A stretch of 64,000 nt of DNA from Bugula neritina (taxonomy: Eukaryota; Animalia; Bryozoa). The notes under the pieces are model-generated. The model saw only the letters and a program-made list of their open reading frames with translations, was not told the origin of the DNA and made no database searches. The stretch spans positions 27,139,673 to 27,203,672 of the forward strand of contig OZ037766.1 in the NCBI GenBank assembly GCA_964035545.1, given 5' to 3'. A program made the translations under genes and the position numbers. Shown here piece after piece: positions 21,595 through 56,558 of this stretch. Every line of letters begins with the position of its first letter. Position 1 is the stretch's first letter.

Positions 21595-24500
21595 CTAGAT
21601 AACTGGAGGAAATTCTGGGAAAAAATAGAGTTTTCTGTCATTAGTAAATGTGCATTGGTGCACTGGCACAACTCCACCAAGCCACTTCTTGCCGTTCTTT
21701 CTTCTCCTAATACTAGATTCTCTTACTCTGTTCTGTATCTACAGCAAACAACATTTTATTTTCAACTTTTATTTAACAAGTTTTTCCAGAATTTATTCAT
21801 TGAGAGTTGAGTTATTGAGTACGAAATTTTAAATTTTATTGCTAATTTCTACTCTTAGAATTCCTCTTTTCTCCTATAGCATTATTTCACTTCATTATAT
21901 TATTTTATATAAAGTCTTTATAATTCCAGCTATTTCACAAAAATAAATCTTATAAATTTTACAATAAAAAGGCAAAGTTTTTCAGCATAATGTAATACAG
22001 CATTAAGTTCCAAGCATTGTAAGTATGGACCGTTTTAACTTTAAAATTGTAAATTAGGTTTGAGGAACTAAATGACATTTACACAGTTAAATACTGTTGC
22101 AACTCGGAACACTGTTTATATGTATTTAGCAACTTTTTTTCTCTGTCATTATAATAATCTTCTACTCTTTTTAGTCGCAGCTATGAAAAATGTTCAACTA
22201 TGCTCTAAAAGCAAACAGCGCTCTTTTCAAGCCAAGTTTCAATATGTGTTTTTGTTATTTTTATCGACAGCAGTAGTCATCATTGAATTACTAACCCAAT
22301 AGGTTATAACTTACTATTTTAGCCAGACTTTCAAGGTCTCTGTGACAGGCATGTTTATAAAAAGTAGCTACAAGAATTCTGATGAAGCATGATCCGTGGG
22401 TTAGACTCCTGGTTGATACATAATCTACAAAAAGACAACGTAAAAAAATATGCCATTCCTAACTACTTATATTGAGGTACTAATGTTAATCAAAACAGGC
22501 ATGTAAAATATGCTTTCACTTTATCGCAACATTGTAGTAATTTGGTGGATTTAGAATAATTAAGTGGAGAATATAACTCCTTGTATTTAATAGAGAAGTA
22601 GAGAGCTTCTTGTAAGGTATGAGAGTATCTCTATTGAATGTAGAAATATCCGAGGTGGGTCTTTATCGGGTGAGCTTCAGCTGTAGACTGACTCTACACT
22701 GCGAGCTCGCCTCTTTATTATATACTCTGAAAATATTTTTTCAAAAATATTCTACCGATCTTCAGTCGAAAATTGGTCATATGTCCGACATGTCAGAGTC
22801 TTCAACTCAAATGCCCGACACTCCGACATGCCTGACTTCGGACAAAGAACGCTGTATAGCACACAACAAAAAAAGCAACCAAGAAAATAAAACTATTTGT
22901 CAAGCTAAGGCTACATATTAATAAAACAAAAAGACAACTTCAAAATCCATCACAATATTGTGATATGGCATCTCACCATCGCTACTGGCTTTCATTACAA
23001 AGAAGTCATCTGAATCCAAGTGAATATCTTCAAAATTAGGTAATGACCGTGGCGGAATAGCTGCTTCAGCATTCTCACTATAACTGGACTCAGCATCAAA
23101 TTGTTCCTGAGAAAGTTGGGAAGTTAGAAAAGAATTCTGATCATCTTGACTTGCAATGTTTTCTTCTAAAGAAGTATGGCTACCAGCTCCTTGCACATTT
23201 ATTGGGTCATTAGAGCTGTTTTTGGTATCTCCATAGTCAATTCGATCTATCAAGCAGAGAATACTTATTTATATACTGTTTACAACTTCCAGCTGCTCAC
23301 AAGTCACAATATGACTGATTCTATTCCCAGCCATGCATAAAATATTAAATTTGGTTTTGATCAAATGGCCTTTTGTTATTAGTTGAAGCAGCGAAAGCAT
23401 CCCATCCAGCTGCAGCTTTGAGTTAAATCAGTGGTCCATGGTGTAAAGGTTGGCGCGTTTGCTTGCAAGCTGGAGGTTTTGGGTTCGAACCCCAGTGGGG
23501 CAAAATTATTTTTTTAACAACAATTTTGTGTTTTAAACAAACACTAAAACTTACTGCCAGAACAAGCTTGAATAATAATAAGTTTAGGCTTTCCTTTCAT
23601 TGATTGGAACTGAGATGCAGAAAGTAACTGTTTTATATCACCAAGCTTGACCCACTTATTGTCATGACTCAGAATTTGATCTCCAGTCTGCCCATGGCTC
23701 ATTATTATCAAAACAAACATAGAAAGGTGTTTGTGCACCTCAAGTACTGTTTCGTCTTTTATGGCCTGAAACATCTCCTGAAATTTATGAAAGTATGTTT
23801 AGGCAAATTTTTAAAATTCACTTTAAAATATGAAATAAAGGATATTTTTAGTTTAGACATCTAGCATTTTTTCTAACAGTGTCTAACATGTGCGTTGTGA
23901 GCAGCCCATAGCCTGCATATATACACAGTTGCTGTGACTCATAGCTCCTGTCATCTAAATCTTGTAGATAAATAGATACAATTCTCAACTTGGTTCTTGA
24001 CATTTGTTTATAGCACTGTTTAAATTACACTTCATTGCCTCTGAACATGCTTTATTCACTTGACTTTCTAATTACCTAGTTTTAGGTTATTAACAATTAT
24101 TAGCTACAGGGTGCCATTCTCAGATCACAGTAATTTTACCGATTGTTTATTTGTTCTGTCAGCTCAGGCTATTTGGTAAAAAGTGCACAAAAAAGTTTAT
24201 TCACACATTTACCTTTGAACTTAGGTATAAAGGTGTGAAATGTCACTGAACCAAATAATTAAACTAGCAAAAGCATATAATATATATATGCAATATCATT
24301 TACATCTTTGTTCTAGTTTAAACGAAAGTTATTTCCGATATCAAAGTTAGTAAATCGTAGCAAGCAATAGTTTTTTGCAAGTTTTGTTCATGTTACACTG
24401 AAAGCTTGTGTTCCCGAAAAGTTTGAATGAAAGTTCAAATAAATTCAGTGACTGTTTATAAAGAAGGCCTACAATATTTCTATTAAGCTACTGGAAACTC

Positions 24501-24938
24501 ATCATTTCAAGTTACATTTAAAGTATGAGCAAGATTACTTATTCTACAAAAGATAGCATGTTTTGTCAATTAAAGCTTTTACTGTAGTATAGAGTAATAT
24601 ATATAGATCTCAATCAGTTTTGAGAATGAAGACAACTTAACATAGGAAATACAGAACATCAACAAACTGATCAAAATCAAAATATACGCAACATAGTCCT
24701 AATGTCTAATGATTGTTTAGATTAGAAATTAGATTAAATAAAATAATTTTACCTCAGATGTTAAATCTGTCGTATCTTCTTCATCCGTCGCAATTTCAAA
24801 GCTCATTTTTTCAAACAAGCGTCTTATATTTACATAATCAATCTCTCCACCTTTTCGCGCATAACCAGGTTTGTTTTTAAAAAGTCGGTTATCTAAGATT
24901 AGAACCCTTCCTTTCACTTCAGTGTTCATAGGGTAGAC
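21595..24938 (-). CDS. Caspase domain of the fusion (exons 8-12): p20, long acidic linker, p10
   Basis: Catalytic His in SHG at 23691-23699 and catalytic Cys in QACSG at 23556-23570. p10 exons 22315-22424 (DYVSTRSLTHGSCFIRILVATFYKHACHRDLESL) and 21595-21738 (IQNRV...TFTNDRKLYFFPEFPPVI*) are not in the ORF track. Confidence 0.93.
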
Positions 24939-27900
24939 CTTTTACAATTATTTAAAAGAAATTTCATAATATTTTTATAATCAAGCAGAGTTGCATGTGA
25001 ATATATTAACAAACAACAAATTTGAAAAATAATGCATGACATTACATACCATTTATTTCAAATAATGTTATTCCTGTTTGAATTTCACTTATAATACCTT
25101 AGTAGTGTTGGAAAACAATCGAGTTACTGAATCCTTAGTGCAAGGTTTTAGCTCCATTTTGATGCATGCGTTGCTCTGTGTACCAAAATAGCCTTGTTGC
25201 TCTACATCAGATACCTCGCTATCCTCATTTTCCACTGGGTAGTTGATTGCTTGCAGACCTGTAGCAACAGCAAAAACATTTAATTGAGTATACAAGTGTA
25301 TACTTCACTCACTGTCAAGCCAGAAAGCATTTTGAATAAAAAAAATATAAACTAGAATGGCTACACACCAGTCCTAACAACTAATCTCACCTGATGGCTT
25401 AAAAAAATCATTTCGTTGTAATTTTTCTGTGTAGTCTTTGAGTTTACTCATCTCACATTCAGAAAATTCAAAGCCTGAAAAAAATAATTGACATCTCACA
25501 TTGCTATATAAAATACATGCGCGGTAAGAAAATTAGATATTCAGTTTATTAAAAAATAAGGGATACATATTGCAATTACCAACTCTTACAAGGAAATTTG
25601 AAAGGTTTTGGAACTGTCTGCTTGGATGTTCCTGGTTGCATGCCGTTGTTGCAGTAAACAGGCTCAACTCCTCTAAAACTTTTTACACTGACAAAAAATC
25701 TGTTATTTAAGTGAGACTCTTTTGGTGCAGCAAACAGCCAGGATGGATTCACTTTGGTATCTGGAGTAGGCGATCTGATGAGTAAGCAGTGAGAGCAATA
25801 GAAGGTTATCACTGGGCGAATAGCTCTCCAAACATTTGCCAATTTGTTTAGGATGTGTGCTATTAAACTGGTTAGCAAGCTCCATGAAGAGCCAATCAAT
25901 TCTATTGGACTTGAAACTAGTATCATAAATTTTCTATTGTTGTAGTCATGTACTAGGTGCAAGGATTGTTCACCTTTGCCCACAAATGTTCCATTACCAT
26001 AGACTTTTATCGAGCAAGTTTCATCTGAGATAAAGTTTAACACTTCTACTGTAATCAGCTGATGAACATATTTAGGAAGATGAAGCCCATTAAACAGTAT
26101 CTCCATTTTTAATTGAACATCATTTGGTGGCAACAAATTTTCATTGGTAAATTCTTGAGTAAAATAGGGCACAAAGTAACCTTTGCCATATTCTTGTGTA
26201 ACTGGTCCATGAATAATACAAAACGACTTCAGAACTTCAATTGCAGCCTCATGAGGAAAGTTTGTTTCTGTTTTGAGAAGATGGATTAATAACACTTCAT
26301 TCAATAAACCACTTTCTGTAAAAGATTTTATGAACTGTTCATAGGTTTGTTTTTCTATGATTTGATTTTCAAATCTAAAAGTTCTGAATGTTTGGAGGCG
26401 TTGTTCCCATTTACTTTTAGATGAGTGGTGAAACAGTATTGAAATCATATCAGTTATTATTGGTATTTGATGAAAGACATACTGTTTCAAAATGCGTATG
26501 TTTTCAAACCAGAATATTTTTCCTGAGTCATGAAAGTATCGCAATACTACTTCTATCGCTTTGTCTTGTGTAAAACTGTTTTTAATGAATGACAAATCTA
26601 TGCAAGCCTTATCCTTGTGCATTTCCACAAAATTTTCAAGTTCTTTCCAAATTTTTGGAATAATGACTTTAAAACTTGAAGAACGTTGTTCTATGCAATG
26701 CATGAGGCCAAGTAGTTGATCCTGAACTTGCTCCACACCTATTTCAAAAGTTTCTTCAGGATTAAAAAGCTGTTTTGCTGTATTTGAAACATGACTAATT
26801 TCACAAAAACCCAGGTCGTCTTTGGAGAACTCCATTTGATCATCAATCATCTCATTTCTGATAGCTTCAACAGCAAAAAGAAAACCTTGTTTTGCTTTAG
26901 AAAACACCTCAGATGTCAGCTTATCTAAATGAGTGAACACAAGGATTGGGGGTCCAAGATTTGGGGAAGCCAAGTAAAGATGGGATAGCCAATCAACACA
27001 ACGCCGCCTTGTTGCTTCACGATAACCTTTACTCCGGGCTAACTCAGCAAACTCTTCCATGTTGACAACAATTATTGGAATACAATGTTGCTTTAGTGCC
27101 AGTTGATAAGCTAAGTGGTAGACTTCGTGACCACCGAAATCAATAAATTTTAAAGTTGTGTCTTTGAGTTGGCAAGTTTCCATTTTGAAAACTCTGGTTG
27201 TTTCATCTAAGGGTGAAATTTCATTTCGAAATGTCAACTTCCTTTTGCCTGATACCAAGCTTCGAATCAGGCTAGTTTTCCCAGCCATAAAATTACCAAC
27301 AACAACCACAGGCACGATTTTATTTTCCGTCTCTTGTCCCGCTAAACTGTCACTAAAATACTTTCGTATAGCTGGTAACCCTTGCTGGCAAACAGAGTAT
27401 GGTGGCAGTTCTAGCAACTCACATCCGACGCAAATTAACTTCTTCAAATTGTTCAACGCGAGCAACTCAGGCTCCATTTGTCGAAGCTCCTTGTTGCTAC
27501 TGAAATCAAGCTCATTCAAGTTATTTAACTTATAGATAACTTTAGGAAGATGAGTGAACTTGTTGAAAGAAATCTCTAATTTTTCTAGATGTTGTAGTTT
27601 GGATAAGCTGTAATTAAGAATATAAAAATAATCAGTCATGGTTTTGGCATTACAGTTTAAAAATCAAAGCATTAGTTATTTTAGAGTTGAATACATGTTA
27701 CAACGCCTTCGATCTGTGTTATAGCTAATTTTTCATTAAAAGCCGCTGCAAAAATTTTTAAGAGTTTATTGGTTACATCTTTAGATTTGTGATGCCTTTT
27801 ATATAAAAGTTCAGAGGACTGGATATACAAAGTAGCATAGTTATGCTGTCTTACTGTTTGGTTTACTGCTTTTACTAATAACCAAAATTTGGAGATTCGT

Positions 27901-30900
27901 AGCACATAATTGCTATAATTTTTTTATTGGGCCTCCCCAAACTTCACAGCACCCTATTGTCTTCAACAATAATAACATAATTATATGTAAAGTGTTAATT
28001 AAAAGTTTTTCTTCTTGCATAATTTAACAAAAGCCAAAGCACTTAAGTCACCATACAGCCAGTGCCATTCTTTATTTAAATATAGCTGCTGTGTAGTGCC
28101 ATTCTTTGTTTAAATAGCTGCTGTGTAGGTGAGAAGTTCCCATGGCTCTTCTACTAATACCCAGATCTATATCTGCCATTTATGATTTATTTCTAAAAAT
28201 TTAAGGTAATGCAAGACATTTTTAATAAATTGACATCAATATTGTAATGAGTTATTTTTATGAAACCTCAATTCTTATATAACAAAATCTACGTTTAGAT
28301 GGATACAACACACAAGTGACTTATTATTATGTTCTATTATCAAAACCTAAAACAGTAAGTTTATTTTAATATACTTTATCTTTTTCTAATGCATTTTGTG
28401 CTAAAATTGCTTGCAATGGCAGTGTAAAATTAGAAGTCGCAATCAAAACTAAATTTTCAGTTAGAAACTCTCTGGCACCCTATACGTAGTGAGCCTGGGG
28501 AGCCGAAAGCTCCACCAATTAGAAACTAAGAAATGTGGTAAACAATTTAAGGTACTCTCACCCTTTTCTCCAGACTTTGGCTGTTACTAATTATCACTTT
28601 TTAATTATATAAATGCTAATTAAACTTTAAGACTTATAGGAATAAAATGCTGTATGAGCAATATGTCATTAAAATTATTATTTAGTAGTGGTACATATAC
28701 AGAAAGCTCTGACTTGGAGATTTTCGCCAAATAACTAGCTTTAATCGAGTGATTTAAGCTGTATTATTTGACCTTGAACAAGTTTAACACTTTGAAAAAT
28801 AATATGTTCACTTCCATTGGTGATGTTAGGAGGAGCATCCAGTCATAGTTGCTCCTGTGCCTCATCTGAATAAGCCCTTAACCCAATTTAACAAAAAACC
28901 CTTTTCATGGGGGTTTCACAGGGATGGTGACTATAAACTTGCGCGAGTTTTTTTATGTGATATTTATAAAATCACGACGCCACACTTGATCACCTTACCT
29001 CATTGGTATATCTCTTAGATTGCACTGTACAAGTACCAGTTGCTTCAGCATACTCAGCTCTGAGATTGCTTCAGGCAATCCATTGGCAAAGTTTGCTTCG
29101 AATATTTGAAGGATCTGAAGGTTACTCAAAGCCTTGAACCTTTCCAAAATAAAATACAATCAGCAAAACAATATATGCAAACTTTATTTACAATGGTATG
29201 AATAAATTTTGTGTAAAACTCAACAAGTGAAACTTGCTGTGCATATTGTACTAAAAACAATATATACCATGCTAATCAAGTGGCAAATATCTGATGAAAC
29301 AAAAGCAATTCATTTTTAAATTCTATAAACTCGTGGCGATTTCTAATGAATGCATTTGTTTTCTGCTTCAATATAATTATTACCAATTTTAATATAGATC
29401 TATAATCTGCCAACCAATTTGCAAGTAATTTTTTTACCTCTATAGTCAGATTGTTTTTCTAGCTTTATCCGTCAATATGAAAATGTGCAAACAACTGCAA
29501 TTTTTAGAAAATTTTACAGTTCAGTAGCAAAATAGGCTTGTTTAAATAGAGCAATATAGTTATGGTACGTTGTTTTTAACAATTTTAAGAGCTTTTATAT
29601 AGGCAAATATTTATTACTTGTTTGAGTGTATATTGAGATATATTCTAGAATCTAGTGTAACATTATTAGCATGGGGGATTTCAAACTGCAGTTTTATCAA
29701 GTATTTGTTAAGTTAGTCATGTGACCAACTAACACTCAAGCATGTTTCATTTGACAAAAAATATTCGATAAAACACAGTATTTATAAGATCTTTTTACCT
29801 CTCTGGTAAGTCACGAAGTTGACAGCTAGCTAGTAGAAGTTTAGTTAGAGAGCTAAGGCTACATATGGCGTCTGGTAAACCCTTTGACATGTTGAATCCT
29901 CTTATTCCAATTTTTTTCAGCTTACGGAGAGATCCTAAACTGAATGCATACAGGCTATAATATTAATTCAAGAAATTCGAATTTGAACTGTTTTTAATAT
30001 GTAAACATCATAAGCATAACAAAAGCACCAGTTGAGCTATAACAAATTAACATTAGCATTCTGCTTCTATAAACAAAGGGCATTTCAATTAAATATGAAA
30101 GGCATAGTGAAAATTGACTTGCATGTACCAATTAGAGATTAATTTAATTTATAAAAGGTTTTATTTACATCAGGTTTCAAATACTAGGCTAATGTCCGGT
30201 TATATGTAGACTGCAATTCTCTGATCATATTACTACTTATAGCATTAGTTTTGTTATAATTAGGATTATATGTTTCCCTATGTCCTAATCAGGTGGTGGA
30301 TTAGATTATATAATTACGATAATTAGCATTGTTGTTACTATACCCATTATCAATTGTAATATAATAATTACTGTGTAGCAAAGAAGACTAGTGTGACTTA
30401 ACATAACACAAGTTATATACAAAAATACACTGTTTATTTTATTATTAAACAACTACACAATACTAGCCAGGGTGTATGGTTGGCAGCTATAAACGTATTG
30501 CTTCTTGCTCTATATTTTTGCAGCCTGAGCCAGTTTTTGCTTGCATTAGTTAGCTAAAAATGTTAAAAATTAATATATCAGATGATAAAGGAGGGTTTTT
30601 ATTGGAATTATATATTAAATTTTTTTTGCATTGAATTTACTTCAGATTCATCACTTTTCAGTGGTTCCTATAGTCACTTTTCAGAATTAATTATTATTTT
30701 GATCGTTTGACTGATTTAATAGGTGTTGCAGGAGTATTGGCAGCTTTCCAAAAACCATTGTTAAATGAAAGCTATTTACTGACAGTTTTAATAGGTGCTA
30801 GGTAAAACTCTAGCAGGTCAGTGTGTAGCTTATATATCACAGTTATACCAACATGCAATCTATATAAATTTAAACAATTGACCAATCATGTACACTTTTT

Positions 30901-31606
30901 CAATTAAGCTCATTTAAAGTTTGTAGCTACATTATGTATAATTAATTCAAAACTGTGTCATAAGTTATATAACTATATATAAAGTCATTTTTATTACCTA
31001 GGCAAGTCAGTTGGTTTTGTTACCAATTTCAAGTCATTAAGTGAGAAGATTCAAGAATTAACTTTTACTCTTACTTATACTCACCAGTCTAAAGGATAAG
31101 ATGTTTGTCTGTTTCCTACTAGTTTTATTCTAATAGCATTTGGGCATAAGAAATCTAATGGCAGCATATGTTGGTCAATTTGAGCGTATAGATGAGTGAT
31201 TTGGTAGGGGTGAACACTTCTAATTATAGTGTTATAGTCTTCAACAGTTGTTAGTTGACTTTCAGGTATATATGGCATTTTGTCAATCTCATCTTCCCCA
31301 CTATGCCTGTACCACAGCCTACAGCCTGTAAATAGCACCACAATCTCATCACATCATTTTAGTGTAACTTAGCATGTGACATAGCTTTGGTTATTGCATT
31401 GTTATAAACTGTTGCTCATAGTTGCATCCTCTAAATGCTTTGATAGAACATTTAATGTCGAAGCATATACTGTATTTAGATAGAAAGCAAGCCCAAGTAA
31501 AATGAAGCACGAATAAGAATTAATTACCTGAATCCGAGACAAGCTGTGTTGGTAAATCTTCTGTGTACACTTGTTGGGAATTTTCTTTGCTGGGAGTGTC
31601 CCCCAT
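21595..31606 (-). CDS. LRR-Roc-COR-caspase fusion protein (Roco family with C-terminal peptidase C14A), 12 coding exons, ~1265 aa
   Basis: Exons 31528-31606, 31085-31325, 29799-29939, 28999-29139, 25590-27607, 25391-25474, 25098-25258, 24753-24938, 23555-23777, 22977-23246, 22315-22424, 21595-21738; all GT-AG, all phases match, 3798 nt with no internal stop. LRRs (LPDAICSLSSLTKLLLASCQLRDLP, LSKLQHLEKLEISFNKFTHLP); Roc G1 GNFMAGKTS, G3 DFGGH, G4 THLD; COR (IPKIW, LRYFHDSGKIFWF, CSHC); caspase YPMN..KGRVLILDN, MSHG, GKPKLIIIQACSG, DDFFV, YVSTR..HGSCFI, RKLYFFP. Confidence 0.9.
23433..23515 (+). mobile_element. tRNA-derived SINE head or tRNA pseudogene inside a caspase intron
   Basis: TGGTGTAAAGG (A-box-like), TTGCAA loop, GGTTCGAACCCC (B-box), then a T-rich tract; stems too poor for a functional tRNA. 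Confidence 0.55.
25590..27607 (-). CDS. Exon 5 of the Roco-caspase: last LRRs, LRR cap, Roc GTPase and COR domain
   Basis: Corresponds to ORF 25576-27639. Roco-type LRR cap LELPPYSVCQQGLPAIRKYF; P-loop at 27271-27297; DFGGHEVY at ~27118-27141; THLD at 26923-26934. Acceptor ttacag| at 27607, donor CCT T|gtaaga at 25590. Confidence 0.93.
28068..28128. repeat. Short tandem duplication (~33-35 bp x2)
   Basis: AGTGCCATTCTTT(A/G)TTTAAA(TA)TAGCTGCTGTGT occurs twice head to tail. Confidence 0.85.
28815..28950 (+). mobile_element. SINE copy 2 (core and tail; head degraded), intronic
   Basis: GATGTTAGGAGGAGCATCCAGTCATAGTTGCTCCTGTGCCTCATCTGAATAAG...ACCCTTTTC...TCACAGGGATGGTGACTATAAACTTG matches the other two copies. 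Confidence 0.75.
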
Positions 31607-33629
31607 TATGGGAATCCAACAGGTTGTTTAACAAAAGACTACATTTTAAATTATGACTAGAAATACTGCATATAAGATCTGGTTTGTAAGCACAACCATG
31701 CTGATGTATTTCCTGCTAACACGACACTACATTGTGGCACTGTTCAGTCCCACATGTGACGTTCTGCAACATATTTGTGCTACATTTTATACTGAAGTGA
31801 TTACAAAATTATCTAAAGCCCAACACTTACACGATTGTGACCTGCATGAATGCTTTGCCAGCCAAAGAGAAACTTTCACTATGACAACAGTTCAAACAGG
31901 CTAAACTATTCAAATTAATTCCTCAGGAGAGAATAAAACACTGCCTGCAGGTATTCTTTTTTTTCCTTATCCTTTATTCTTGCTAATGAATAATATGCCT
32001 ATATTGTGTTATAACTCTATAGTTCTGATTAAATATTGATAGAATAAATTACATCACAAGCTAATAATAATAATATACAATAGCAAAAATATTGATCTGC
32101 GCATACTTTTCATTGAAATATTTGCATAATGTATTGATTGATCGCCTGATGCAATTTGATTAAAGGTTCTAGGCCAGTTTCTATATATAATATCGTGTTA
32201 CCATAAATCAAATACTTTGATTGAATTTGTTATTGCTAGTGTTTTAACAGCCAAGTCAAACAACTCATGCAAAAGCAGCTTTTATAAGCATATCATGCTT
32301 GTATAAAGACATTTTAATTGGACCCCCTATTTCATACTCTATGCACGGTATATGAAGTATCAGGTTCTACTTACCTACAGTCTGTGTAAGAGTCCCCCCT
32401 GCAGTCTTTACTTTCACTCTCACAACAGCCAATATCCAAGCCGTACAAGCTGGTAAGGCAGTTAGCCAATCACCTCATGTTAGCTTGTAGCTTATCTGCT
32501 AAAGACTATAAACCGCATTATATTCCAGTATAGTTAAGTAAAATTATAATAACTGCATAATTCATCAGAATATTTGGATCCCTACTTGATGTCATGGTGT
32601 TATAATGTAAATTTATTTCTATATGTTAGCAAAAGTATATTCATAGCTAATAGGCTATATCTTACCCTATTTGTAAATTAAGTGTTTCTTTATTGCTGAC
32701 AAACTAATTGCTTATTGAAGTAAATTTTTCAAATTGATATAATAGATGGTGTAAATATATACATTGTCAAAGTATTGGATGACCTCTTCTGTAATAAAAC
32801 AGTTCGTGTAGACATATCTAGCAAGTATAATATATTTAATAGTTGCATGTAGATTGCTAAGTCATTAACTTTTTGAACTGATGTATTTTGATAGAAAAAT
32901 ACCTCAACTCAATTTTATTACACAAAGCATTTATTTGATTATTACTTCAAAATATTGATATACTAAAACTTTGAAATAATCTTAAAACTTTAGAGAGATA
33001 AAATATTTTATGAATTCATTAGTTTTGGAGCTCTGTAAATCCACAGTATATAAGGTAAAACAGAAGAGAGTATTGATTTTAAAACCACAACTGGTTTAGA
33101 ACTTCAAAATTGCTGTTGAATATGAATCTAGGCTTTGATGTACAGGCAGACTATGCAATATAATTAATAACTTCAATCTTTAGTAATTAGTGCATCTAAT
33201 CAAAGTCACAGTTTCCTAGCAGTACAAACGTTTTGTGTTAGAGAATTGATTATAAAGAAAAGCATGCAGTATAATTAGGAGCACTGCTGAAGTTCTACCT
33301 GCCATGTCTGCAATACTCAGTAATGAGCTCATTCAGTCCTGCAACAAATAACCAATTTACACAGGTTTATGCATCTAAAACATAGTTAAGATACAATTAT
33401 AAGAAAACAAAATGCAAAATTCTATCATTTGCATATTGAGATTTTATTTAAAAGTATTTACTAATCAAATGAGGTTTGTTTTAATTGCAGCTAAAATTAT
33501 ACACGTCATTAGTTTATAAACTAAACTGCTGTAATTATGTAGCTGAATTATAGTTCATAGCTAGTTAGAGTCATGGAGATGAAACTCAGATGTTATTCAA
33601 CATCATGTATAAGTTTAAAATATAGTATG

Positions 33630-34113: not shown

Positions 34114-34719
34114 TTACCTGTCCTCGTCTAACTGGCCGTCTAGCTGGCCAACTATTTCTAACAGCGATTCGATGTAATCTACCACATGGTCCGACCCAGA
34201 CAGCCTGGCTTCATCTAAAGGGGTTGACCCAGCATTGTTTTTGTTGCCTAGTAACCTGGTGAGCTCATCTGATGACAAATCACCCAGCATGCACTGCACA
34301 ATGTTTAGGTGACCTTGAAAAGCCGCAAAGTGCAATGGGGTGTCACCGCCAGTAGAGTTCTTTATCTCTAGCAGCTTGCAAAAGTCTTCCCAGGGCATTA
34401 TAGTAGCCATCGCAGCAAAAATACAAACCTGTGCATTCTCAGCAGCTAAATGAAAGACGGTGAACCCATCCAATGAACTTCTTTGTTCGAAGATTTCGTA
34501 TAACCTTGTAGGTGTTATAAGATTTTCTATTAGATTGAAGATTTCTTTTTTACCGTCCATCAACATCCAGTGAACTATAGTGTGACCATCTTCATCTTGC
34601 TCTTTTAACGCTGCCACTCTCACGTCCATTGTTTTGCTCAGGAGTATATCTCTAAATCTATTTTTTTCATTACAAATCACTAAACCTTTTAATACGTGAT
34701 AAAATGGTGAAGTAGGCAT
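34114..34719 (-). CDS. Ankyrin-repeat-only protein (~201 aa, 4 ANK repeats)
   Basis: Repeats DEDGHTIVHW, SLDGFTVFHLAAEN, GGDTPLHFAAFQGHLNIVQCML, NNAGSTPLDEA. The ORF end coincides with a donor AG|gtaaag at 34118, so the true C-terminus may lie in a downstream exon (33329-33338 gives RTE*). Confidence 0.85.
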   Translation of the reverse strand: MPTSPFYHVLKGLVICNEKNRFRDILLSKTMDVRVAALKEQDEDGHTIVHWMLMDGKKEIFNLIENLITPTRLYEIFEQRSSLDGFTVFHLAAENAQVCIFAAMATIMPWEDFCKLLEIKNSTGGDTPLHFAAFQGHLNIVQCMLGDLSSDELTRLLGNKNNAGSTPLDEARLSGSDHVVDYIESLLEIVGQLDGQLDEDR

Positions 34720-36403
34720 TGTAGTTCTGACCCAAAACTAAAAGTACGCGCAAATCTGTTACAAGAACTGTTTTTAAATGTTTTGTAAAAATAGAACTGT
34801 ACTATATTTAAAGCCTAAAAAAGCTTTTTTCAACATCAATTAAACTTTGGCTTGTATAAAAAAAGCTCTAAAGTGTCATATATCTCATATTTATATTCTA
34901 CGCAGTTTTTTCTTCATTTTAAAAGGCATTTTTACATATCTCACATATACATATAATTAACAAGCATTGCCATAGTTTACTGAATTGTTTTTTTCTCTGG
35001 ATATACATATTAATAAAAGTATATTTCAGAATTGTTTTCTAGCTTCAAAAATCCTTTTAAAAAAAGTCAAATAATATATTATAACCAAAAAGCAACTATC
35101 AGCGCTATAATTATGTAACTTGCTTTAAAATTCACTTAAATTATATTCAATATAATTATTAGCTTATGCCATGCTTTCATGCATATACATGCAACTTCCT
35201 ACTTATTCTTTTCATGTACACTAGCAATGCTCCATTGCATAATTAGGTTGCCGAAAACTCTATTAAATTTCTACGCTTTAAATAAAATGAAATATTGTTG
35301 TACATCAAGTTATGAATAATTAAACATTTTTATATTATAATCAATAATTTAAGATTATATAATATAATATACTGTATATATAAGATAGTTCAATAATTAT
35401 TAGTACCTAATTTACTTTTATACCTTTTTTGAGATATAATAAAATTACATTTTCTTCAAAGTAGAATAGTATTTAATCTAAAATAATATTATTATACTAT
35501 AATATAATTATTCAGATGTTCTGATTGGCTCTTAATGTTTAAGAATTCAATTTAAATAAAGATTATTAGATACTGCCAGTGCAAGCTGGTACTTTCCACT
35601 TTATATATTAGTGGTGAACAAGAAGTCTAAGAAAGGCTGAAATATCTATCATAACTGCAGCAAGTAATTTGTCTTCTAAGGTAAAACAAATCTGCACTGA
35701 ACAGAAACTAAAATTAAGAAGACAATTCTATAATAATAGTTGTGTCATGCTGGCTAAAGATTCTGCTCTATTTTTAAGTAATCCAATTTATTATTCTCAC
35801 TTTCTAACAGCTGCAGTCTTTATTGTTTGATCAATTATTTTTTCTATCAAAACACTTCTTTTAATTTTTTTACTCATCATGTACTCTCATTATTCAACAG
35901 AATTTGTGTCCAAGTAGCATAATGAAGATGGGTTTTATACTCATTTTGATTTAAAATGAAATATATTTCTGAATTTTTAAAGCTAAGCACACTAAAAAAT
36001 TTCATTCTGTAAAACAAGATCTAGTGAATAGCATACATTCAGAATAAAATAGAATATTGAAGCAACTATTTTTAGTTTATTTAGTTTTTATATAAATTCA
36101 AAAGAGAAAATATCATTTTTAATAACAAATATCTTGTTTCACTAAAAATAGGCCTTTTATAATAGTCTAAAAGCAAATTTATGCATTTTAGGGATTTTTA
36201 GCAAATGCAAAAAAATCATCAAAATTTAAAAACCTAAAAATAGCCTATGTCTTTTATAGTCCAAAAGCAAAAATTAATGTAGCAACTGCTGTATAAATTT
36301 TATCAAAACCTAAAAATGTGTTATCTTTTGCAGTAATTAGAACTTGCTGATACACATAGATCACAATGTAGTATGGGGAAGCTTCTCTCCTTGTTTTGAA
36401 GAG

Positions 36404-39400
36404 CTACTCTGTTTGGTCACATACTTGACTCACTGGTGTTTTCAAGCAAATAGTTGGCAAAAGGATTAGCCCTGCCAACATTGTGGCACCTCCAGCTATG
36501 TAGTATGTTAATTCAAATCTATCACCACCAACGCTGAAGAAAAATGCTAAAACAAACAATAATTGTGTAACTTGCAATGAAAATAGGCAAAAGAATCACA
36601 TGCAATTGTAATATTAACATATGGCAAGTTACCAAGAATATATGAGATTCTCTTCAGATTTATAAATTATTCAAGTTTTTATAAAAAACTAATTTAGTAA
36701 GTGTTTGAGGTTTATCTAAATTTAATGCAGATTGGGTGTTAGATAAACATTTTAAAACAAAATTTAAAACAATAGTTTTAATCATTTACAAAGAGGTTAT
36801 TTGTAAAACTTTTTATAACTTTTCAAAACAGCACAAGTCTACAAAAGCACCAAAGCTGTTTGTCTTTTCTCATAGAGGAGTATTACTCTTAAAATAAAAT
36901 TTCATAGTTTGAATTTTGTAATATGAAGGTTATATAGTGCCAAGGTGATAAATGTTATAAAATAAGCACAATATCCAAATAATAATATGTAAGTTTTATT
37001 AGTATATAAAGCTATGATTTAGTGGCTAAAGTTCATAAAATAAAAGCCAAAAAATAAAGATCACTTGATAAAGGTCATAATAAAAAGATTGCAATATACT
37101 AGGATCATGATATACAGGTTGTGATATAAAATTATTTAATATAGAGTTGTATGATATAAAATTATATAGTATAGAGTTATATTATATAGAGTTATATAAG
37201 TTAGAGTTATATAATAGAGTTATATAATATAGAGTTATATAATATATTTATACAATATATAGTATAGAGTTATATAATACAGAGCTATATATAGTATAGA
37301 CCCATAATATAAAGTCGTAATATAAACGGTCATAATCTAAAAGTCATAATATAAAAGTCATAATAATATAAAGATTAAATATGCAAAATTGTTAGCTGTA
37401 CACAAAGCCTACCTGCAGCTGGAGATCCACATATCGTACCAACTCCAGCTGCAAGATTGGTGAGACCAAAGGCTGTATTTAAAAAGGGTTGGGGACTCAG
37501 AATGCTCGTTATCGTGGCAACGTTTGCCAGCTGAATGCCATAAAACAAACCATAGGATGAGCAGGTGATTGCAAGTGCTAAGAAACTGTTGCTGGACCCT
37601 GACGCATCTATGTTCATCAGACAAATACAAATACCGCTTAAAGTACAGGATATTATGTATATGTTGCTATGGTTACAGCGACACAGGCTGGGTAGAATAT
37701 TAAGCAATCTCCCAATCGCATTGCAAAGGCCGAGAGTTGACAAGATGTACACAGCTTGCTGATAAGATAAACCTTTTTGCTCCGCGTAGTCTGGTATAAA
37801 GACAAACACAATAGCCGATCCAAATCCAAACAAACAGTTACTGATCCAAAACAAAATAAATCTCCAAGAGCAAAGAGCTGTTAGCTGTTCTTTAATAGTA
37901 GTTGCCAGAGTTTGTTTCTGATTAATATGCTTTATTGTGATTAAGAGACCAGCCACAGAAATCTGAAGGATAACTCCTACATAATAGAATGGTTTAGAGT
38001 CAGTTATTGTCATGTACACTCCTTACAATAAGATTTGGTATAGCTGTGACCAGGTTCAACTGTTCATAACTCTATCTTAAGTACTTTAGTTTGGTTTAAC
38101 TCTGCATTTTGACAACTTTCTAGAACCCACATGTAAATGTACTAAAATACTACATTGTTATATGTAATTATTTGAATAGTAAATGTTTTGTTTTTAACTT
38201 AAATTTATTGGGATATTAAAGTTAGCTGGTAATAGTATTTCAAGCTTTCTAATTATCTTTGCACATACATACTTGAATTGTTATATAAGCAGCTCCATGT
38301 TAAAGGTTTTTGAGTGCAGTAGTTTGGGGCTCTCTAGTTTGGAGTTAAGGTTTAGTGAAACCCCAACTCCAAACTCAAGAGTGGCACTACTGCACTCATT
38401 CACCCTCTCAACTCGAAGCTGCCTATAGGACAAATCTACATAATTTAAGCTTAAAGTACCTGAAGTTGCTTTCACACTTTATACTTACCGGCTGTCATCA
38501 GATATGCCCCTCTCCATCCAAACAGGCCTATTGCCCATTTTATGTAGAGTGGCATTATTAGCGTCCCAACCCCAATGCCACTGAAACTGATGGTAAAGGC
38601 TACAGCTCTCCACTTTTTAAAATAATGTGAAAGTAAAGTTATAGAAGGTATGGATACAAATGATATTCCAGTACCTAAAATATAAATGCTCATTCAACTA
38701 CATAGTTGAAAAAACTTAATAGAATATTATAATATGATAATAAAAACAAAATGACAATTACTGAAAAATGAAGCCAGATAGGTAAAGTAACATGTAGGAA
38801 GAGCTAGTGCACAGAGCTCCATGGCTGTTTGTGCTTGCTGTGTTTGTATATCGCTGTAAAATCATGTTATTACAAATTGGTAACTGAAATACCTCCAACA
38901 ACTCCAACAGTGATGCATAGCATCCACACTTCAGTAGCGAATGTACCTAAAGCCACGCCTCCAGAAGCCAGTATAGCTCCTCCTACTATTGTCACTCTAT
39001 ATCCAACCTTGTCAGCTAACAGCCCAGCCAATGGGCCTATAGAGTATAATATATATGGGCATAAAGTATAATATATTTCTACACTGTTACTAAAATTGGT
39101 GATGTCATTAAATAATAATAAAAAGTGATTATACTTTACAAGCTAAGCACACAATACTTATTATTGTAGGCTGCAAAACTAACTGTTGCTGTAAGAACAG
39201 TTTACCTGCAAGAAATATAAAGCCAATCTGAAGTGAGCCAATCAGTCCAACAGATTTCCGGACTCCATTAAACTCCTCTAGCAGCACTGGAGTGAATGTA
39301 CCAGCTGACATGGCAGTGCCCACACCAGCAGTCTAACAATGTAAAGAGATGAAGCTTAATTATGTGAACAAGCAGGCAATAAAGGGAACTTAGAAAGAAA

Positions 39401-41820
39401 ATTTATATTATTATGTTATCATGTAGTCATACAAGAAGAATGCTAAACTAATTCCCTAAGTATATGTATTGTTAGCTTGTGATGATTGTTCTTTAAAAAT
39501 TACTAAAATGAATTACATATACAACAAACAAAAATATCCTAAAATCCGAGTTCAAATATTAAATCCATATCAAGTGCATGTTAGTCCTGCAGTTAGAATC
39601 TGCATGTTATGGCTGACACTTACATGAATGAAAAAGCAAATAATAAGAATAACCCATGCATATTTCTTGTCAGTATAATATTCAGCATAGCAACTGTCTC
39701 GTGGTTGGCTAACTTTCTCAAACTCAGTCTTTGGCCCTAAATCCTACAACAGTCAACACATGAAAATATGCCGATATTAAGGTAAAAAGGCTATCTTAAC
39801 AGAACACTTCTAAATTTTTTTGCTGAATATAGAATTGATTTCATAATTCTCAACATAAATTTGCAACTGTTTTTAATTTTCATCCAATGCAATTAAAAAA
39901 AGTTTGCTAAGAATTAGTATGTAAATACTCCATTTTTTATCCATTAATGGTGTTTCAAATTTGTTCACCGAGCTGAAATGGCAACAGTACATCAGTTGCA
40001 TCACAAGAATTAGTAGGCAAAGTTAACATATATAAATCATTTCACAGGAAAAAGCTCACAATGTTTTATAGTCTTTAGATGCTATTTTTTCTCATCTGAA
40101 ATCAATAATTGTTAGAATTCTTCTCAGAACATGGGGAAAGATTGTATAGTTGCTAGTGTACTAACAATAGGGCACTTATATATCAAGTTTTCTGATTTTA
40201 CATCACTTTTTGAACTGGCAAAGTTAGTGATGGTTCAAGTGAAAATCTCAAATTTCTGTTTTTTTCCCAATGAATTTTTGATTGAAGCGTTAATAAATGT
40301 TTTTTTAAGTTCACAACTAGCTTCCTTTGATATTTTTTTTAAATATTTAAAAAAGATCAGTTTCAAATTTGCTTAAGAAGCCAGGCCAGGCAATTTTTTT
40401 CATTTTGATAATTTCAGGCATTTGAACTCATAGAAACTTTTTTAATTTTTGCAAAAAAAGGTATAACAAACAGTATTATGGCTAAAAATTGCAAAAACAC
40501 ACTAAAAAGTTAGAAAAACAGCTTTTTATTCAACAATGAAATGCAATACTAGTTGTATATTGTCCACACATGTGGATGTCCAATACTTCAATTGTTGTAT
40601 GGTGTCCACATATGTGGACAGTGATAAAAAGCATATTTCTGTAAGCATTGTAGAATTTTTCATTCAAAACTTCCAAGGATAAGTTCGTTCCGATTGTGGC
40701 AATGGCATAATAAAAATATGAAAGTTGAACTAAACTGGTTTAGGCTAAAAACATCAAAATAGTGTAATAGGCAAAAAAAGAAAAGCTTGCAAGTGAAACA
40801 GCAATTCGAAATCTTGATTTTAAGGCACAAGTTTCTTTGTCAATAGAGTAAATGCTAAGTAGTTTATTTAAAAAATGTGAAATATCAAAACTTTAACCTG
40901 TTTTAGTGCAAACAAGTAGTGTCCACATATGTAGACGCTGTGCATGAAAGGGATAACCTAAAGCACTGCACTATGTTCTTGCACAAGAATTATTTATTAT
41001 GCAACGTTTTACAAATTTGTTCTAAGCAAATAAATAAAAGAAAGCTTAATGAAAGCATTGTGGGTATAGCTGAGCTGTAACATGAAATGAGCTTACTGAG
41101 TTGTCAAATTACCCAAATAAATTTCTATCAACTAATATTCTAATGACAGCAGCTAGCTCCTATACTCATGTAAAATTCTAAACACCCGTTATTTCTCATT
41201 CATACCTCTTTAACTTAAAAAGATAACTAATATTGTATAAACAAATTTTACCAAATAAGTATTATGACATGCAATATAAAGCAATATAATACAATGGAGT
41301 ACAATATAATACAATAGAATGGAATAATATAATACAATATAAAGCAATATAGTACAACAGAATGCCATATAAAAGTACCACAGTTACAATTTACTATTAA
41401 AATGTTTGAAAAGTTGCAAAGCTACATTCTTTTTTGTGTATAAAAAGACGCGTATATAAGTGTAGACATTTTCTTACTAATATATGTATGCAACTTTATA
41501 TTATATAGTTTGAATCTACAGACATTATGCTGGTCAGAATAATTCTTTATCATACAAAATCAAAATGTAAATCAAATTTAAAGTATATAATTATATAAAA
41601 AGTTTTTTGCTCTCCTTCTTAGAACATTATTCTCAATACCTCTTATACATGTAGTTTCCTGTAACTATATACAATGTATACTAGATACTCGTATTCTTAT
41701 CTTACTATTACTATTTTAATTACAACCTCTTAATATTATTATATTAACTTATAATATCAATATTTTTAGCTATAACACAAGTCATTTTGTACAGTACTTA
41801 TTTACCTCTGAAATGCTCAT
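36404..41820 (-). CDS. Monocarboxylate transporter-like (SLC16/MFS) copy A, 7 exons, ~432 aa
   Basis: Exons 41806-41820, 39624-39743, 39206-39332, 38893-39036, 38489-38674, 37413-37976, 36404-36546 (1299 nt, phase-consistent). SLC16 motifs DKKYAWV, GPLAGLLADKVGYR, HYFKKWRAVA..SGIGVG, FGWRGA, IPDYA, NAIGR. Confidence 0.92.
37110..37375. repeat. Degenerate AT-rich minisatellite (TATAGAGTTATATAA and GTCATAATATAAA units) in an MCT intron
   Basis: Repeated TATAGAGTTATAT motifs; related degenerate units occur at 46550-46870 in copy B. Confidence 0.7.
39796..40952. mobile_element. ~1.1 kb insertion specific to MCT copy A intron 1, ending like a TTAA-targeting (piggyBac-like) non-autonomous element; left boundary uncertain
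   Basis: Absent from copy B, where the equivalent site reads ctTTAAgctaaacc. Right end GAAAGGG|ATAA. The palindromic motif TGTCCACATATGTGGACA occurs at 40603-40620, with variants at 40561 and 40920. Confidence 0.5.
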
Positions 41821-43950: not shown

Positions 43951-44224
43951 CATTTTAAATACTGAAGTTTAAACTGCAATTTCCTTTGTGAATCTAATTT
44001 GGATAATTTGTCCACCTTGTTTGTCGGACTTGTTAGTTTTGTGAGTTTGCCAGTATAATATAGGCACAGCAAAATTGCAAAGGATTGTTGGAATAATTTT
44101 TGTTTTTAGTTTTTTTTTTGTAACATTTTATTGTTATTATAATTTTGCTTGCTTCTATATTATCATCAAATAGATATACATATACAAAAACAATGTTATA
44201 GTTTCTTTCTTTAGGAGAGCAAAG

Positions 44225-44365
44225 AGTGTGACCATCTTCATCTTGTTCTTTCAATGCTGTCACTCTCACATCCATTGCTTTGCTCAGGAGTATATCTCTA
44301 AATCTATTTTTTTCATTACAAATCACTAAACCTTTTAATACGTGATAATATGGTGCAGTAGGCAT
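44225..44365 (-). pseudogene. 5' fragment of the ankyrin gene (first 47 codons), truncated at the duplication breakpoint
   Basis: MPTAPYYHVLKGLVICNEKNRFRDILLSKAMDVRVTALKEQDEDGHT matches ORF 34114-34719, then similarity ends abruptly into AT-rich sequence. Confidence 0.88.
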
Positions 44366-45911
44366 TGAAGTCTTGACCCAGAACTAAAAGTATGTGCAAA
44401 TCTGTTGCAAAAACTGTTTTTAAATGTTTTGTAAAAATAGAACTGTACTATAGTTAAAGCTTAAAAATCTTTTTCAAACCTCAATAAAGCCTATAGGCTT
44501 GTTTACTTAAAGAAAAGCTTTATAAAGTGTCATAGTTCATATTTATATTCTAGACATTTTTTCCTTCATTTTAAAATGCATTTTTACATATTAACAGGTA
44601 TTAGGCATTGCCGTAGTTTATTGAATTGTGGGTTTTCCCTGAATATACACATCAATAAATGTTTAGTTGAGAATTTTTTTCTAGCTTTCAAAATACTAAA
44701 AAGAAGTGAAATATAATGTAACCAAAAAGTAAATATCAATGCTATTATTTAACTCGCTTCAAAATTTACTTAAATTATGTTCAATATATTTATTAGCCTG
44801 TGCTTCCTTGCATATATACAACTTGCTACTTATTTCTCTCATGCATATAGCAATACTTCATTGCATAATTAAGTTGCTAAAAACTTTGGTAAATTTTTAC
44901 ACTATTTAAATGAAATGAAATATTATTGCAGATAAAATAATGATGATAATTAAGCATTTATATCTTATAATATAAGATAAATTATGATTATATTTACTGT
45001 AATATATATAAAGTATTTCAACAATAATTGGTACTTTACTTTTACATCTTTTTCTTTTTGAAATTCATTGAAATTGCACTTTTTACAAAATAAAATATTA
45101 TTTGATCTAAAATATTTAGATATTTTTAGTTGGTCCTTGTTTAAGAATTCAATTTAAATACAAAGTATTAGAGATACTGCTAGTGCAAGCTGGTACTTTC
45201 CACTTTATATATCAGTAGTGGTAAACAAGATGTCTGAGGAAGGCTGAAACATCCATCATAACTACAGCAAGTAATTTGTCTTCTAAGGTAAAACAAATCT
45301 GCACTGAACAGCAACTAAAATTAAGAAGACAACTCCAGAATAATATATGTGTCATGCTGGCTCAAGATTCTGCTCTATTTGTAAATAATCCATTTTTGTT
45401 CTCCCTTTCTGACAGCTGCAGTATTTATTGTTTGATCAATTATCTTTTCTATCAAAATACTTTTCTTGTTATTTTTATGAATTATTATGTCTCAATGTTC
45501 AACAGAATTTGTGTCCAAGTATGGAGATGGGTTTTATACTCATTTTGATTTAAAACAAAATGTATTTCTAAATTTTTAAAGCTAAACACACTAAACAATT
45601 TTACTTTGTCAAATAAAATCTACTGAGCTGCATATATTTAGAACAACATAAAATGTTAAAGCAAAATTTTTTTCAGTATATTTAGTTTTATATAAATTTA
45701 AAAGAAAAATAGCATAGTCAATAAAACTTATCTTTTGCACTAAAAATATGCCTTTTATAACAGTCTAAAAACAAAATGTATTTCAACAAATGCAAAAAAA
45801 ATTATCAAAATTTAAAAACCAGTTGTTATTTTTTGTAACCTGGAACTTGCTGATATATGCATATTCACATTGCAGCATAGAAAAGCTTCTCTCCTTGTTT
45901 TAATTAAAGAG

Positions 45912-48900: not shown

Positions 48901-50365
48901 AAAATGGATATTATTATGTTATCACGTAGTCATACAAGAAAAATGTTAAACTGATTCATCTGTCGAAAGATGTTTTTAACTTAAGACCATTGTGATTTAA
49001 AAATCGATAAAATAAATAATAAATTATGTAACAAAAAAAATGTTTTAAAATCAAATTTCAAATAGTAAATAGATATTCACACCAACTGTTTGTTTTGATA
49101 AAAATCAGCTGTACGGTGGTTTATATATGCATGTTATATGACTATAACTACATTTCCAAGCTTTTTCATTCCATGTTTAGAAGCAGTTGCATCAAATGAA
49201 ACCACAACCGTAATTGTATGCAAACCGAAATCACAAATTCATCAGTAGGAGCATTTATTGGAATAATGTAGTAATATAATGGAAAAGTAGTGACTATAAC
49301 ACTTACATGAATAAAAAAGCAAATAATAAGAATAACCCAGGCATATTTCTTGTCAGCATAATATTCAGCATAGCAACTGTCTCTTGGTTGGCTAACTTTC
49401 TTGAGCTCAGTCTTTAGCCCCAAATCCTACAACAGTCAACACATGAGAATATGACAATATTGTAATGGCTGTGGGAGAACGTGTTACTTCCCAGCTATTA
49501 GGTATACAAACACTTGCATAGAAAGTGTTACTGTATTATAGTTAATAAGTATTATGACATTCTTTGTGTTACGCTCAGGCTAACATTGTGAAATGCCCCA
49601 CTTCTGCGGTGATGACGCAGGATTCCATACTATAAGCCGCTGCAGTCCTCACTACCGGAACCCACCGGCCAATCAAATGACACTTTTCCTTTATTATAAG
49701 CGCCATCATTATATATGTAGAGCCAAGCTAACTATCTTGTCATCTGTATGACTTGTATACTTTCTTTTGATTCAATGTACACTTCTTTTTGTAATTAGAA
49801 TTGTAAATATAATTGTTTATCTAAACGTAACAAATACTCTGTTTTTTCCGTAAACCTTGTAGACAGGTTTTGATCTAGCAGTCAAAGCACACAATAAAAC
49901 CACACCTGTATATATAATTAGTCCACAAAACTACAAGAATATTAAAGCAGACTGATTGTATTATTAACATTAATTGTTCTTTAAGCTAAACCACTGTTAT
50001 ATGTTTTTACATAAGAAAGATCTTTAATGAGAATTTTTAAAAATTTGGTTCAAGCAATTAAATTAAAAGAAAATTAAAAGAAAGCATTATGGGTAGCTGA
50101 GCTGTACCATGAAATGAGCTTACTGAGCTGTCAAAGTACCCAAATGAACGTATATATTAACTAATAACTATATTTTATGGGCAACTGTTCCTATACCCAT
50201 GCAAAATCATATATTATACACTTCTTATCTCTTTATTAACTTAAAAAAATAGCATTTTAATTACAACATCATAATACTATTATACTAATTTACAATTTCA
50301 ATATTGATTTTTAGCTATAATATAAATCATTTTGTACAGTACTTGTTTACCTGTGAAATACTCAT
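45912..50365 (-). CDS. Monocarboxylate transporter-like (SLC16/MFS) copy B, 7 exons, ~432 aa
   Basis: Exons 50351-50365, 49307-49426, 48709-48835, 48375-48518, 47972-48157, 46892-47455, 45912-46054; every exon length equals copy A and the frame is intact. Confidence 0.92.
49461..49937 (+). mobile_element. Probable solo LTR (~475 bp) in MCT copy B intron 1
   Basis: Absent from copy A; begins TGTA and has TACA at 49932-49935; flanked by a direct repeat AATAT; internal CCAAT, TATAA and AATAAA (~49893) in the expected order. Confidence 0.6.
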
Positions 50366-53742: not shown

Positions 53743-53830
<88 letters not shown>

Positions 53831-55962: not shown

Positions 55963-56558
55963 AATTTACATTAGCTATAGAACATAAAAGTTAAAGCAGG
56001 CTGACGTTCCATTGCATCATTATAACTGTGAACGTTCTCCATCATCTGACATAAAATACGCAACTTGGGTAAAATATTTAGTTTAATTGAGGTTATTCAA
56101 TATTTGTTTCCATTAGCTTTTAGCTGGCTACACTTAGTAAATATATCCAATACAATAAAATATAATAAACTCAAACTTATACAACAAAGATATGTAATAC
56201 AATCAAATGTTATACAGTAAAGCAAAGGCAAAAAATATCTTTGAAACTTGGAGGAAATTAGAGAAACTTTTCTTCCTTTTTCTTTCCTTTATAACTGGCT
56301 TTAAGCTCATGAATTATAATAGTATAATATTTAGTATCCTGTAACAAGATACCAAATAGAAGAGATAACACTACACACACTTTATATACCAGAATATTGC
56401 TATAGTTCAGTGTTTGTTATAGAAGGGGTAGAGTAGAAATTAGAAGCATTTTAATTATGTATAGTAGTAAAATCTCGAACTGCTTGTCTATTGTTCGAGA
56501 AGAAATTCCAGTATCTGGATATGTTGAGAGATGTAACCGGAAGAGTTTGAGACTGCTA

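Follow-up and report, generated by a model that had tools for sequence, protein, structure and literature searches.

The window analysed here is a stretch of 64,000 nucleotides (nt) from the bryozoan Bugula neritina (NCBI GenBank assembly GCA_964035545.1, contig OZ037766.1, forward-strand positions 27,139,673 to 27,203,672), and all positions below are counted from its first letter. On its minus strand, in an AT-rich region between 31606 and 21595, lies a gene of 12 exons whose introns all have GT-AG ends and which encodes, over 3798 nt, a protein of 1265 amino acids (aa) with a single, terminal stop. The product joins leucine-rich repeats (LRRs), a Roc GTPase and a COR domain to a caspase and is called here a Roco-caspase. 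The initial annotation, made from the letters of the sequence alone, had spliced a frame of exactly this length and had placed two linker exons between COR and the caspase, and transcripts bear out both. One RNA contig of 4409 nt (L001, from run SRR4020085) carries all 12 exons in order with a 3' end reaching 21397, and 11 of 11 junction 28-mers were found in it with 0–3 mismatches. Over the 6000 letters (27589–21591) compared with RNA contigs from four runs belonging to four studies, seven introns were spliced out at GT-AG ends, including, in all four runs, the junctions around the linker exons that had been singled out for an RNA check (25590/25474, 25391/25258 and 25098/24938). The RNA contigs are 95–99% identical to the window and thus represent other alleles or sibling species, not the sequenced individual. 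Furthermore, all 12 exons, their splice sites and an upstream neighbour of the major facilitator superfamily (MFS) recur at the syntenic locus of another B. neritina assembly (GCA_010799875.2, hereafter L002). This is a real, expressed and fully spliced single-transcript gene. An 11-exon model (acceptor 29934, without the exon 31325–31085, 1183 aa) was rejected, since the RNA has that exon and the acceptor 29939. Exon 7 (25096–25262) is covered in RNA run X1 by an additional contig that shows 18 differences and an insertion of 6 nt and comes from either a close paralogue or a strongly diverged allele. The intron between exons 9 and 10 harbours a tRNA-Cys gene or tRNA-derived repeat (23432–23503, plus strand) that is partly missing in the haplotype of JGI contig L009.

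Domain and structure queries consisted of single exons, database proteins and RNA contig L001, and Pfam was run exon by exon. Pfam LRR matches were obtained in exons 3–5 and a Roc match of 32.3 bits (cut-off 27) in exon 5, along with COR-A (E = 7e-4) and COR-B (E = 0.02), both below cut-off. The predicted structure of exon 5 (predicted local distance difference test score 90) matches LRRK1, CtRoco and LRRK2 over its whole length, as well as the isolated COR structure 3dpt. Roc is directly followed by COR in both Pfam and the structure model, which is the hallmark of the Roco family, and a conserved Cys cluster closes COR. Motifs G1 to G4 of Roc are conserved across the bryozoan family described below (P-loop intact in 56 of 60 bryozoan-type rows), and no canonical conserved G5 motif was found in the Roc region examined. 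According to Pfam and structure matches, the NTPase is a Ras-like Roc and not the NACHT or NB-ARC domain of NLR/STAND receptors. By every feature testable this is a Roco protein, for which GTP binding, GTP hydrolysis and a COR-mediated monomer–dimer cycle would be expected.

In the structure model, COR is succeeded by one helix and then by a disordered acidic stretch. No CARD, DED or death domain was found here, Pfam being blank on the linker and the model lacking a death fold, and the idea of a death fold hidden in this helix and disorder was discarded on the same grounds; the protein thus has no prodomain of the kind that marks the classical initiator caspases (2, 8, 9, 10 and 1). An S[DE][VLI]SD motif occurs in the linker of 10 of 13 bryozoan rows and in none of six amphioxus rows, with diverging sequence on either side, and could be a cleavage site or an acidic kinase site. 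Peptidase_C14 is matched by exon 9 (46.8 bits) and, below cut-off, by exon 8. The dyad of His1045 and Cys1089 is intact within QACSG, a form of the caspase motif QACxG; in an alignment with caspase-3, Arg983, Gln1087 and Arg1187 fall on the residues of its Asp pocket, the small-subunit stretch alone scoring weakly. The model has the caspase fold with a large and a small subunit, separated by a long, acidic and disordered intersubunit linker, and its best Foldseek matches are caspase-9, caspase-11 and CED-3 (target template-modelling score about 0.8, with small margins). As to relatives of this domain, the structure search slightly favours caspase-9/-11 and the sequence search caspase-3, and an Atlas search returned generic caspases only. 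By every feature testable the domain is a caspase, predicted to be an Asp-specific protease. We take its intron pattern to resemble that of caspase-2/-9/-1; no paper on caspase intron patterns was found in the literature searched. The initial annotation is thus upheld in its order of LRRs, Roc with G motifs and COR, in its full caspase with intact dyad and both subunits and in the lack of CARD, DED and death domains.

Table 1. The Roco-caspase gene and its features (positions in the window; aa, residues of the 1265-aa protein)
Feature	Position	Strand	Remarks
Whole LRR-Roc-COR-linker-caspase gene	21595..31606	-	12 coding exons, 1265 aa; frame, RNA contigs, second assembly
5' untranslated part of exon 1	31607..31931	-	325 nt upstream of ATG; limit is the reach of the RNA contig, not a mapped start
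Exon 1	31528..31606	-	aa 1-26; frame, RNA contig, database protein P0097
Exon 2	31085..31325	-	aa 27-106; without Pfam match; degenerate LRR-like stretch at its end
Exon 3	29799..29939	-	141-nt phase 2-2 LRR cassette, two repeats; Pfam, RNA
Exon 4	28999..29139	-	141-nt phase 2-2 LRR cassette, two repeats; Pfam, RNA
Exon 5	25590..27607	-	aa 201-873; last LRRs, Roc, COR-A, COR-B, terminal Cys cluster; phase-1 donor
Roc G1 P-loop GNFMAGKTS	27271..27297	-	aa 305-313
Roc G2 threonine	27196..27198	-	kept in 61/62 bryozoan-type rows
Roc G3 DFGG	27130..27141	-	aa 357-360
Roc G4 THLD	26923..26934	-	aa 426-429
Arg557 codon CGA	26539..26541	-	TGA stop in L001 (1993-1995) and L002; intact in window and L009
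Exon 6	25391..25474	-	linker helix after COR; RNA, structure model
Exon 7	25098..25258	-	disordered acidic linker with S[DE][VLI]SD motif (25220-25206), then run-in to caspase
Exon 8	24753..24938	-	start of caspase large subunit; S1-pocket Arg983 (24857-24855)
Exon 9	23555..23777	-	catalytic His1045 (23696-23694), Gln1087, Cys1089 (23564-23562) in QACSG
Exon 10	22977..23246	-	long acidic intersubunit linker and start of small subunit
Exon 11	22315..22424	-	small subunit; S1-pocket Arg1187 (22410-22408)
Exon 12	21595..21738	-	last part of small subunit, with stop codon; 3' untranslated part reaches at least 21397

The alleles of this gene differ at Arg557, where the reference assembly (L002) and the independent transcriptome (L001) share a stop; the site is intact in the window, in JGI contig L009 and in the database open reading frames (ORFs) P0001 and P0156. 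Because of this nonsense allele, the NCBI annotation of the reference assembly divides the locus into two genes (302 and 604 aa). The stop-bearing mRNA was assembled at normal depth and would encode the LRRs, Roc and part of COR-A (556 aa); downstream of the stop there is an in-frame COR-caspase ORF of 677 aa. Between the window and RNA allele L001, the ratio of non-synonymous to synonymous polymorphism (pN/pS) was 0.25 for the caspase and 0.44 for Roc-COR, in both cases from small counts.

With exon 5 as query, 110 clusters (50% identity) were retrieved at E < 1e-30, of which about 60 rows, many from unlabelled samples, form one bryozoan-type clade with 100/100 support. The window gene belongs to this family by the position of its Roc-COR, its downstream caspase exons and its shared introns. 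This Roc-COR is joined to a caspase with catalytic motif in no fewer than nine database proteins from Watersipora and three from Bugula, and caspase exons also lie downstream in two diverged genomic paralogues (36% and 28% identical). All four Roc-COR exons that were checked share one Pro-Cys splice donor at their end, contigs L006 and L007 being too short to show caspase exons. In Watersipora XP_067947674 all seven post-COR introns occupy the positions and phases of the window gene, and a further eight introns, of phase 2, lie in the LRR region; across relatives the number of LRR motifs ranges from 3 to 22, with the LRRs in phase-2 cassette exons. GTPase motifs, catalytic dyad and Asp-binding residues are conserved across this large and diverged family. 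It is hidden by automated annotation under names such as MFHAS1, CASP8 and SHOC-2, and no paper on bryozoan Roco-caspases was found in the literature searched, which covered few subscription journals; as far as that literature goes, the bryozoan expansion is undescribed.

The same search yielded an amphioxus protein (P0113) composed of LRR, Roc, COR-A, COR-B and caspase, and a follow-up brought twelve such Branchiostoma proteins, alongside siblings ending in GT4, OTU or death domains. Among Branchiostoma P0171–P0210, the C-terminal position after LRR-Roc-COR is swappable between caspase, GT4 glycosyltransferase, OTU and death domains, and P0175 and P0199 carry both caspase and GT4. In Roc-COR trees (midpoint root, long branches present) the bryozoan and amphioxus proteins fall into separate clades, with the latter nearer to hemichordate and other Rocos. 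A joint bryozoan–amphioxus Roc-COR clade was rejected by the approximately unbiased (AU) test, with p-AU 7e-31 for caspase-bearing rows only and p-AU 0.001 when the amphioxus effector-swapping clade was included; a joint clade of the caspase domains had p-AU 0.22, with two outgroup rows only, neither of them named. Because the Roc-COR trees reject a common clade, the LRR-Roc-COR-caspase fusion probably arose more than once. If the presumed caspase-2/-9/-1 intron pattern holds, both lineages would have started from a CARD-type caspase and replaced its prodomain, at an intron of phase 1, with a Roco module.

Elsewhere in the window, a tandem duplication on the minus strand (34579–39564 and 44225–49070, offset by about 9.5 kb, 81–90% identical) holds an ankyrin-repeat ORF (34114–34719; partial copy 44033–44365) and an MFS transporter gene (37375–38019; copy 46818–47507), and the contig of the other assembly matches both copies piecewise. 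An ORF of 270 aa (60386–61198, plus strand) has, by eye, the look of NHL or beta-propeller repeats and no Pfam match. Long simple repeats at 56417–57106 and 53701–54056 give rise to spurious Ala-Ser, Leu-Pro and His-Thr ORFs.

As to the function of the Roco-caspase, we favour, with a probability of roughly 0.55, a cytosolic single-chain surveillance protease in which sensor, switch and initiator caspase are united and the caspase would be activated by Roco-driven proximity. Initiator caspases are active as dimers. The Roco module would stand where an initiator-type caspase has its CARD or DED prodomain; the intron at the end of the Roc-COR exon is of phase 1 and precedes the caspase exons. At rest the protein may be a monomer, most likely GTP-bound by analogy with CtRoco, and its tethered caspase would be kept as an inactive zymogen; a dimer through COR-B would then be favoured when the variable LRRs sense a ligand or disturbance or when the nucleotide state changes. 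The flexible linker of about 85 residues would let two caspase domains pair and cut their intersubunit linkers, the acidic S[DE][VLI]SD motif may be a control point, either as a cleavage site freeing the caspase or as a phosphorylation site, and the resulting Asp-specific proteolysis would trigger cell death or defence signalling. The logic of the NLR inflammasome or apoptosome would thereby be placed in one chain, with a GTPase instead of a STAND ATPase, and the collapse of receptor, adaptor and caspase into one protein put forward in the initial annotation is plausible. In published work, CtRoco, the best-studied Roco protein, is a dimer when empty or GDP-bound and a monomer with GTP (PMC5714945), COR-B mediates Roco dimers (PMC6337361), and caspase fusions are activated by forced dimerisation, according to work cited in PMC2575513. 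Since CtRoco with GTP is a monomer, a caspase that is activated in dimers would be off in the GTP state; by this bacterial precedent the dimer would be GDP-bound or empty, which refines the 'GTP-switched' protease of the initial annotation's title. The surveillance reading is supported by the splicing, the conserved Roc motifs and caspase residues, the structure matches of exon 5 and of the caspase, the pN/pS values against L001 and the variable LRR number, and also by the swapping of the C-terminal slot, filled by caspase, GT4, OTU or death domains in amphioxus and by at least 24 effectors in bacteria.

Several points weigh against a surveillance protease of this kind. The nonsense allele, present in at least two samples, makes the copy dispensable in some colonies. 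An excess of amino-acid changes in the N-terminus and LRRs between the window and L001 (pN/pS 1.38; 10 non-synonymous, 2 synonymous) was not reproduced with the second haplotype L002, and because the latter gives 0.46 the signal is weak. The residue that follows the catalytic Cys in QACSG is not the usual Arg. When COR and caspase were modelled together, the placement of the two domains relative to each other was not fixed (predicted template-modelling score 0.47), and the structure predictions were of monomers only. The oligomer behaviour of human Roco proteins is variable and debated, and no functional study of any Roco-caspase was found in the literature searched.

The foremost of the alternatives, though an unlikely one, has LRR-Roc-COR as a scaffold for localisation or developmental turnover that targets the caspase to membranes or partners, with an upstream protease cutting the acidic linker. 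Bryozoan polypides undergo cyclic turnover, and their cyclic degeneration and regeneration would be an example of such a setting; the linker motif kept in most bryozoan rows amid diverging flanks, the action of human Roco proteins in trafficking and at membranes, and the presence of transcripts in four of four RNA runs, none of them on record as challenged, would all be in keeping with it. However, dozens of paralogues below 50% identity, the variable LRR number, a segregating null allele and the swapping of effectors in relatives fit receptor families better than developmental genes. We rank next, and likewise consider unlikely, an inverse switch in which a Roco dimer or a closed LRR-Roc-COR fold keeps the caspase off until GTP-driven monomerisation, or damage that a pathogen effector does to the LRR/Roc part (guard/decoy), frees it. 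GTP monomerises CtRoco, its GTP-bound monomer has been described as the activated state, and MASL1 without GTP binding is more toxic, which points to nucleotide control with a sign that differs between systems; initiator caspases, on the other hand, need dimers, and a monomeric GTP state would require another platform.

It is considerably less probable that the gene is a decaying member of a birth-and-death family with little function, as might be read from the Arg557 stop that the reference assembly shares with one transcriptome and from the degraded P-loops in 4 of 60 relatives; the window, L009, P0001 and P0156 have the site intact, all catalytic residues are present, the gene is spliced in four studies, and both caspase and Roc-COR show purifying selection between alleles. 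Almost no credence can be given to two neighbouring genes or an assembly artefact, with the Roco part ending at the stop at 25576 and the caspase separate, an outcome that the initial annotation had named as fatal to its reading. The raw ORF does end at 25576 and the reference annotation has two products, and as contigs drop rare isoforms, retention of intron 5 may exist as a minor form; as the main form this is refuted by the single RNA contig spanning everything, by the splicing of the junction in four studies and by the same introns in Watersipora relatives, while the nonsense allele explains the split annotation. More tentatively than the surveillance protease itself, and at somewhat less than even odds, we propose that one-chain immune or death receptors, with the Roco GTPase cycle directly gating an initiator caspase, arose independently in bryozoans and were greatly expanded there. 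If true, this would be an animal alternative to NLR inflammasomes and would offer a direct protease read-out of the Roco monomer–dimer cycle debated for LRRK2: a COR-tethered caspase would report, by a simple fluorogenic assay, which nucleotide or oligomer state is 'on', a question that concerns both LRRK2 and MFHAS1. The gene also gives a hint of the way in which intracellular defence may work in a colonial animal that harbours a heritable bacterial symbiont. That the fusion occurs in bacteria, in amphioxus, in bryozoans and, with additional adaptors, in a sponge, and probably arose more than once, suggests a general use of LRR-Roc-COR to switch cell-death effectors, as a counterpart of the STAND ATPases.

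Among known systems, MFHAS1/MASL1 and CtRoco share with the window protein the LRR-Roc-COR core, its fold and its G motifs, and databases call the bryozoan proteins MFHAS1 homologues; however, the former have no C-terminal caspase, whereas the window protein does not end after COR but continues into one, and the bryozoan proteins form a clade of their own (100/100). A Roco review makes no mention of caspases. NLR inflammasomes, the Apaf-1/caspase-9 apoptosome and the PIDDosome with caspase-2 likewise combine a repeat sensor, a nucleotide or oligomer switch and a proximity-activated initiator caspase, but use STAND ATPases or death-fold adaptors on separate chains, and none of these domains occurs in the bryozoan protein, which is not an NLR, not a classical initiator caspase and not MFHAS1. 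P0120 (Lingula) and P0122, in which LRR-Roc-COR ends in a weak CARD match, have a two-chain version of the same logic. Other caspase-bearing combinations were seen in P0212 (ENA/JGI contigs, 936 aa; LRRC8/pannexin-like membrane region, LRR and caspase) and P0170 (Logan contig, 1028 aa; Mind-bomb-like SH3, ankyrin, RING and caspase).

The initial annotation knew of no described animal protein with the layout LRR-Roc-COR-caspase and could not confirm its novelty; the layout is not new, being present in amphioxus and already listed in a catalogue (PMC8195603) for bacteria and, with an added DED and TRADD-N, for a sponge. Amphioxus 'LRRs-caspase' hybrids were proposed in 2008 as a direct link from recognition to apoptosis, Roc and COR being unnamed (Zhang et al., PMC2575513), and the amphioxus Roco-caspases found here are probably these proteins; an amphioxus caspase paper (PMC3196919) mentions neither LRR nor Roc. 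The amphioxus proteins (e.g. BRAFLDRAFT_67388, XP_035697785) have the same domain order, an animal C14 caspase, five caspase introns at identical positions and phases and a Roc-COR part ending in a phase-1 intron. In contrast to the bryozoan protein, to which they are about 21% identical, they have neither the helix nor the acidic linker, read QACRG at the catalytic Cys, encode LRR-Roc-COR in one exon (in the gene checked) and have the caspase as one of several interchangeable effectors. The sponge protein, Amphimedon XP_019855546.1 (supplement of PMC8195603), also unites an animal Roc-COR and a caspase in one chain, but in the order AP-GTPase+COR+DED+TRADD-N+caspase, with the adaptors kept and no LRR listed. 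Bacterial LRR-AP-GTPase-COR proteins carry at least 24 defence effectors including caspase (Kaur et al. 2021, PMC8195603), and those counter-invader proteins with the identical string of LRR, AP-GTPase, COR and caspase (e.g. OQX07365.1) have a proposed anti-invader role; these, however, are prokaryotic, predicted only, and have a caspase in the broad sense, whereas the bryozoan gene is rich in introns and encodes a p20/p10 caspase.

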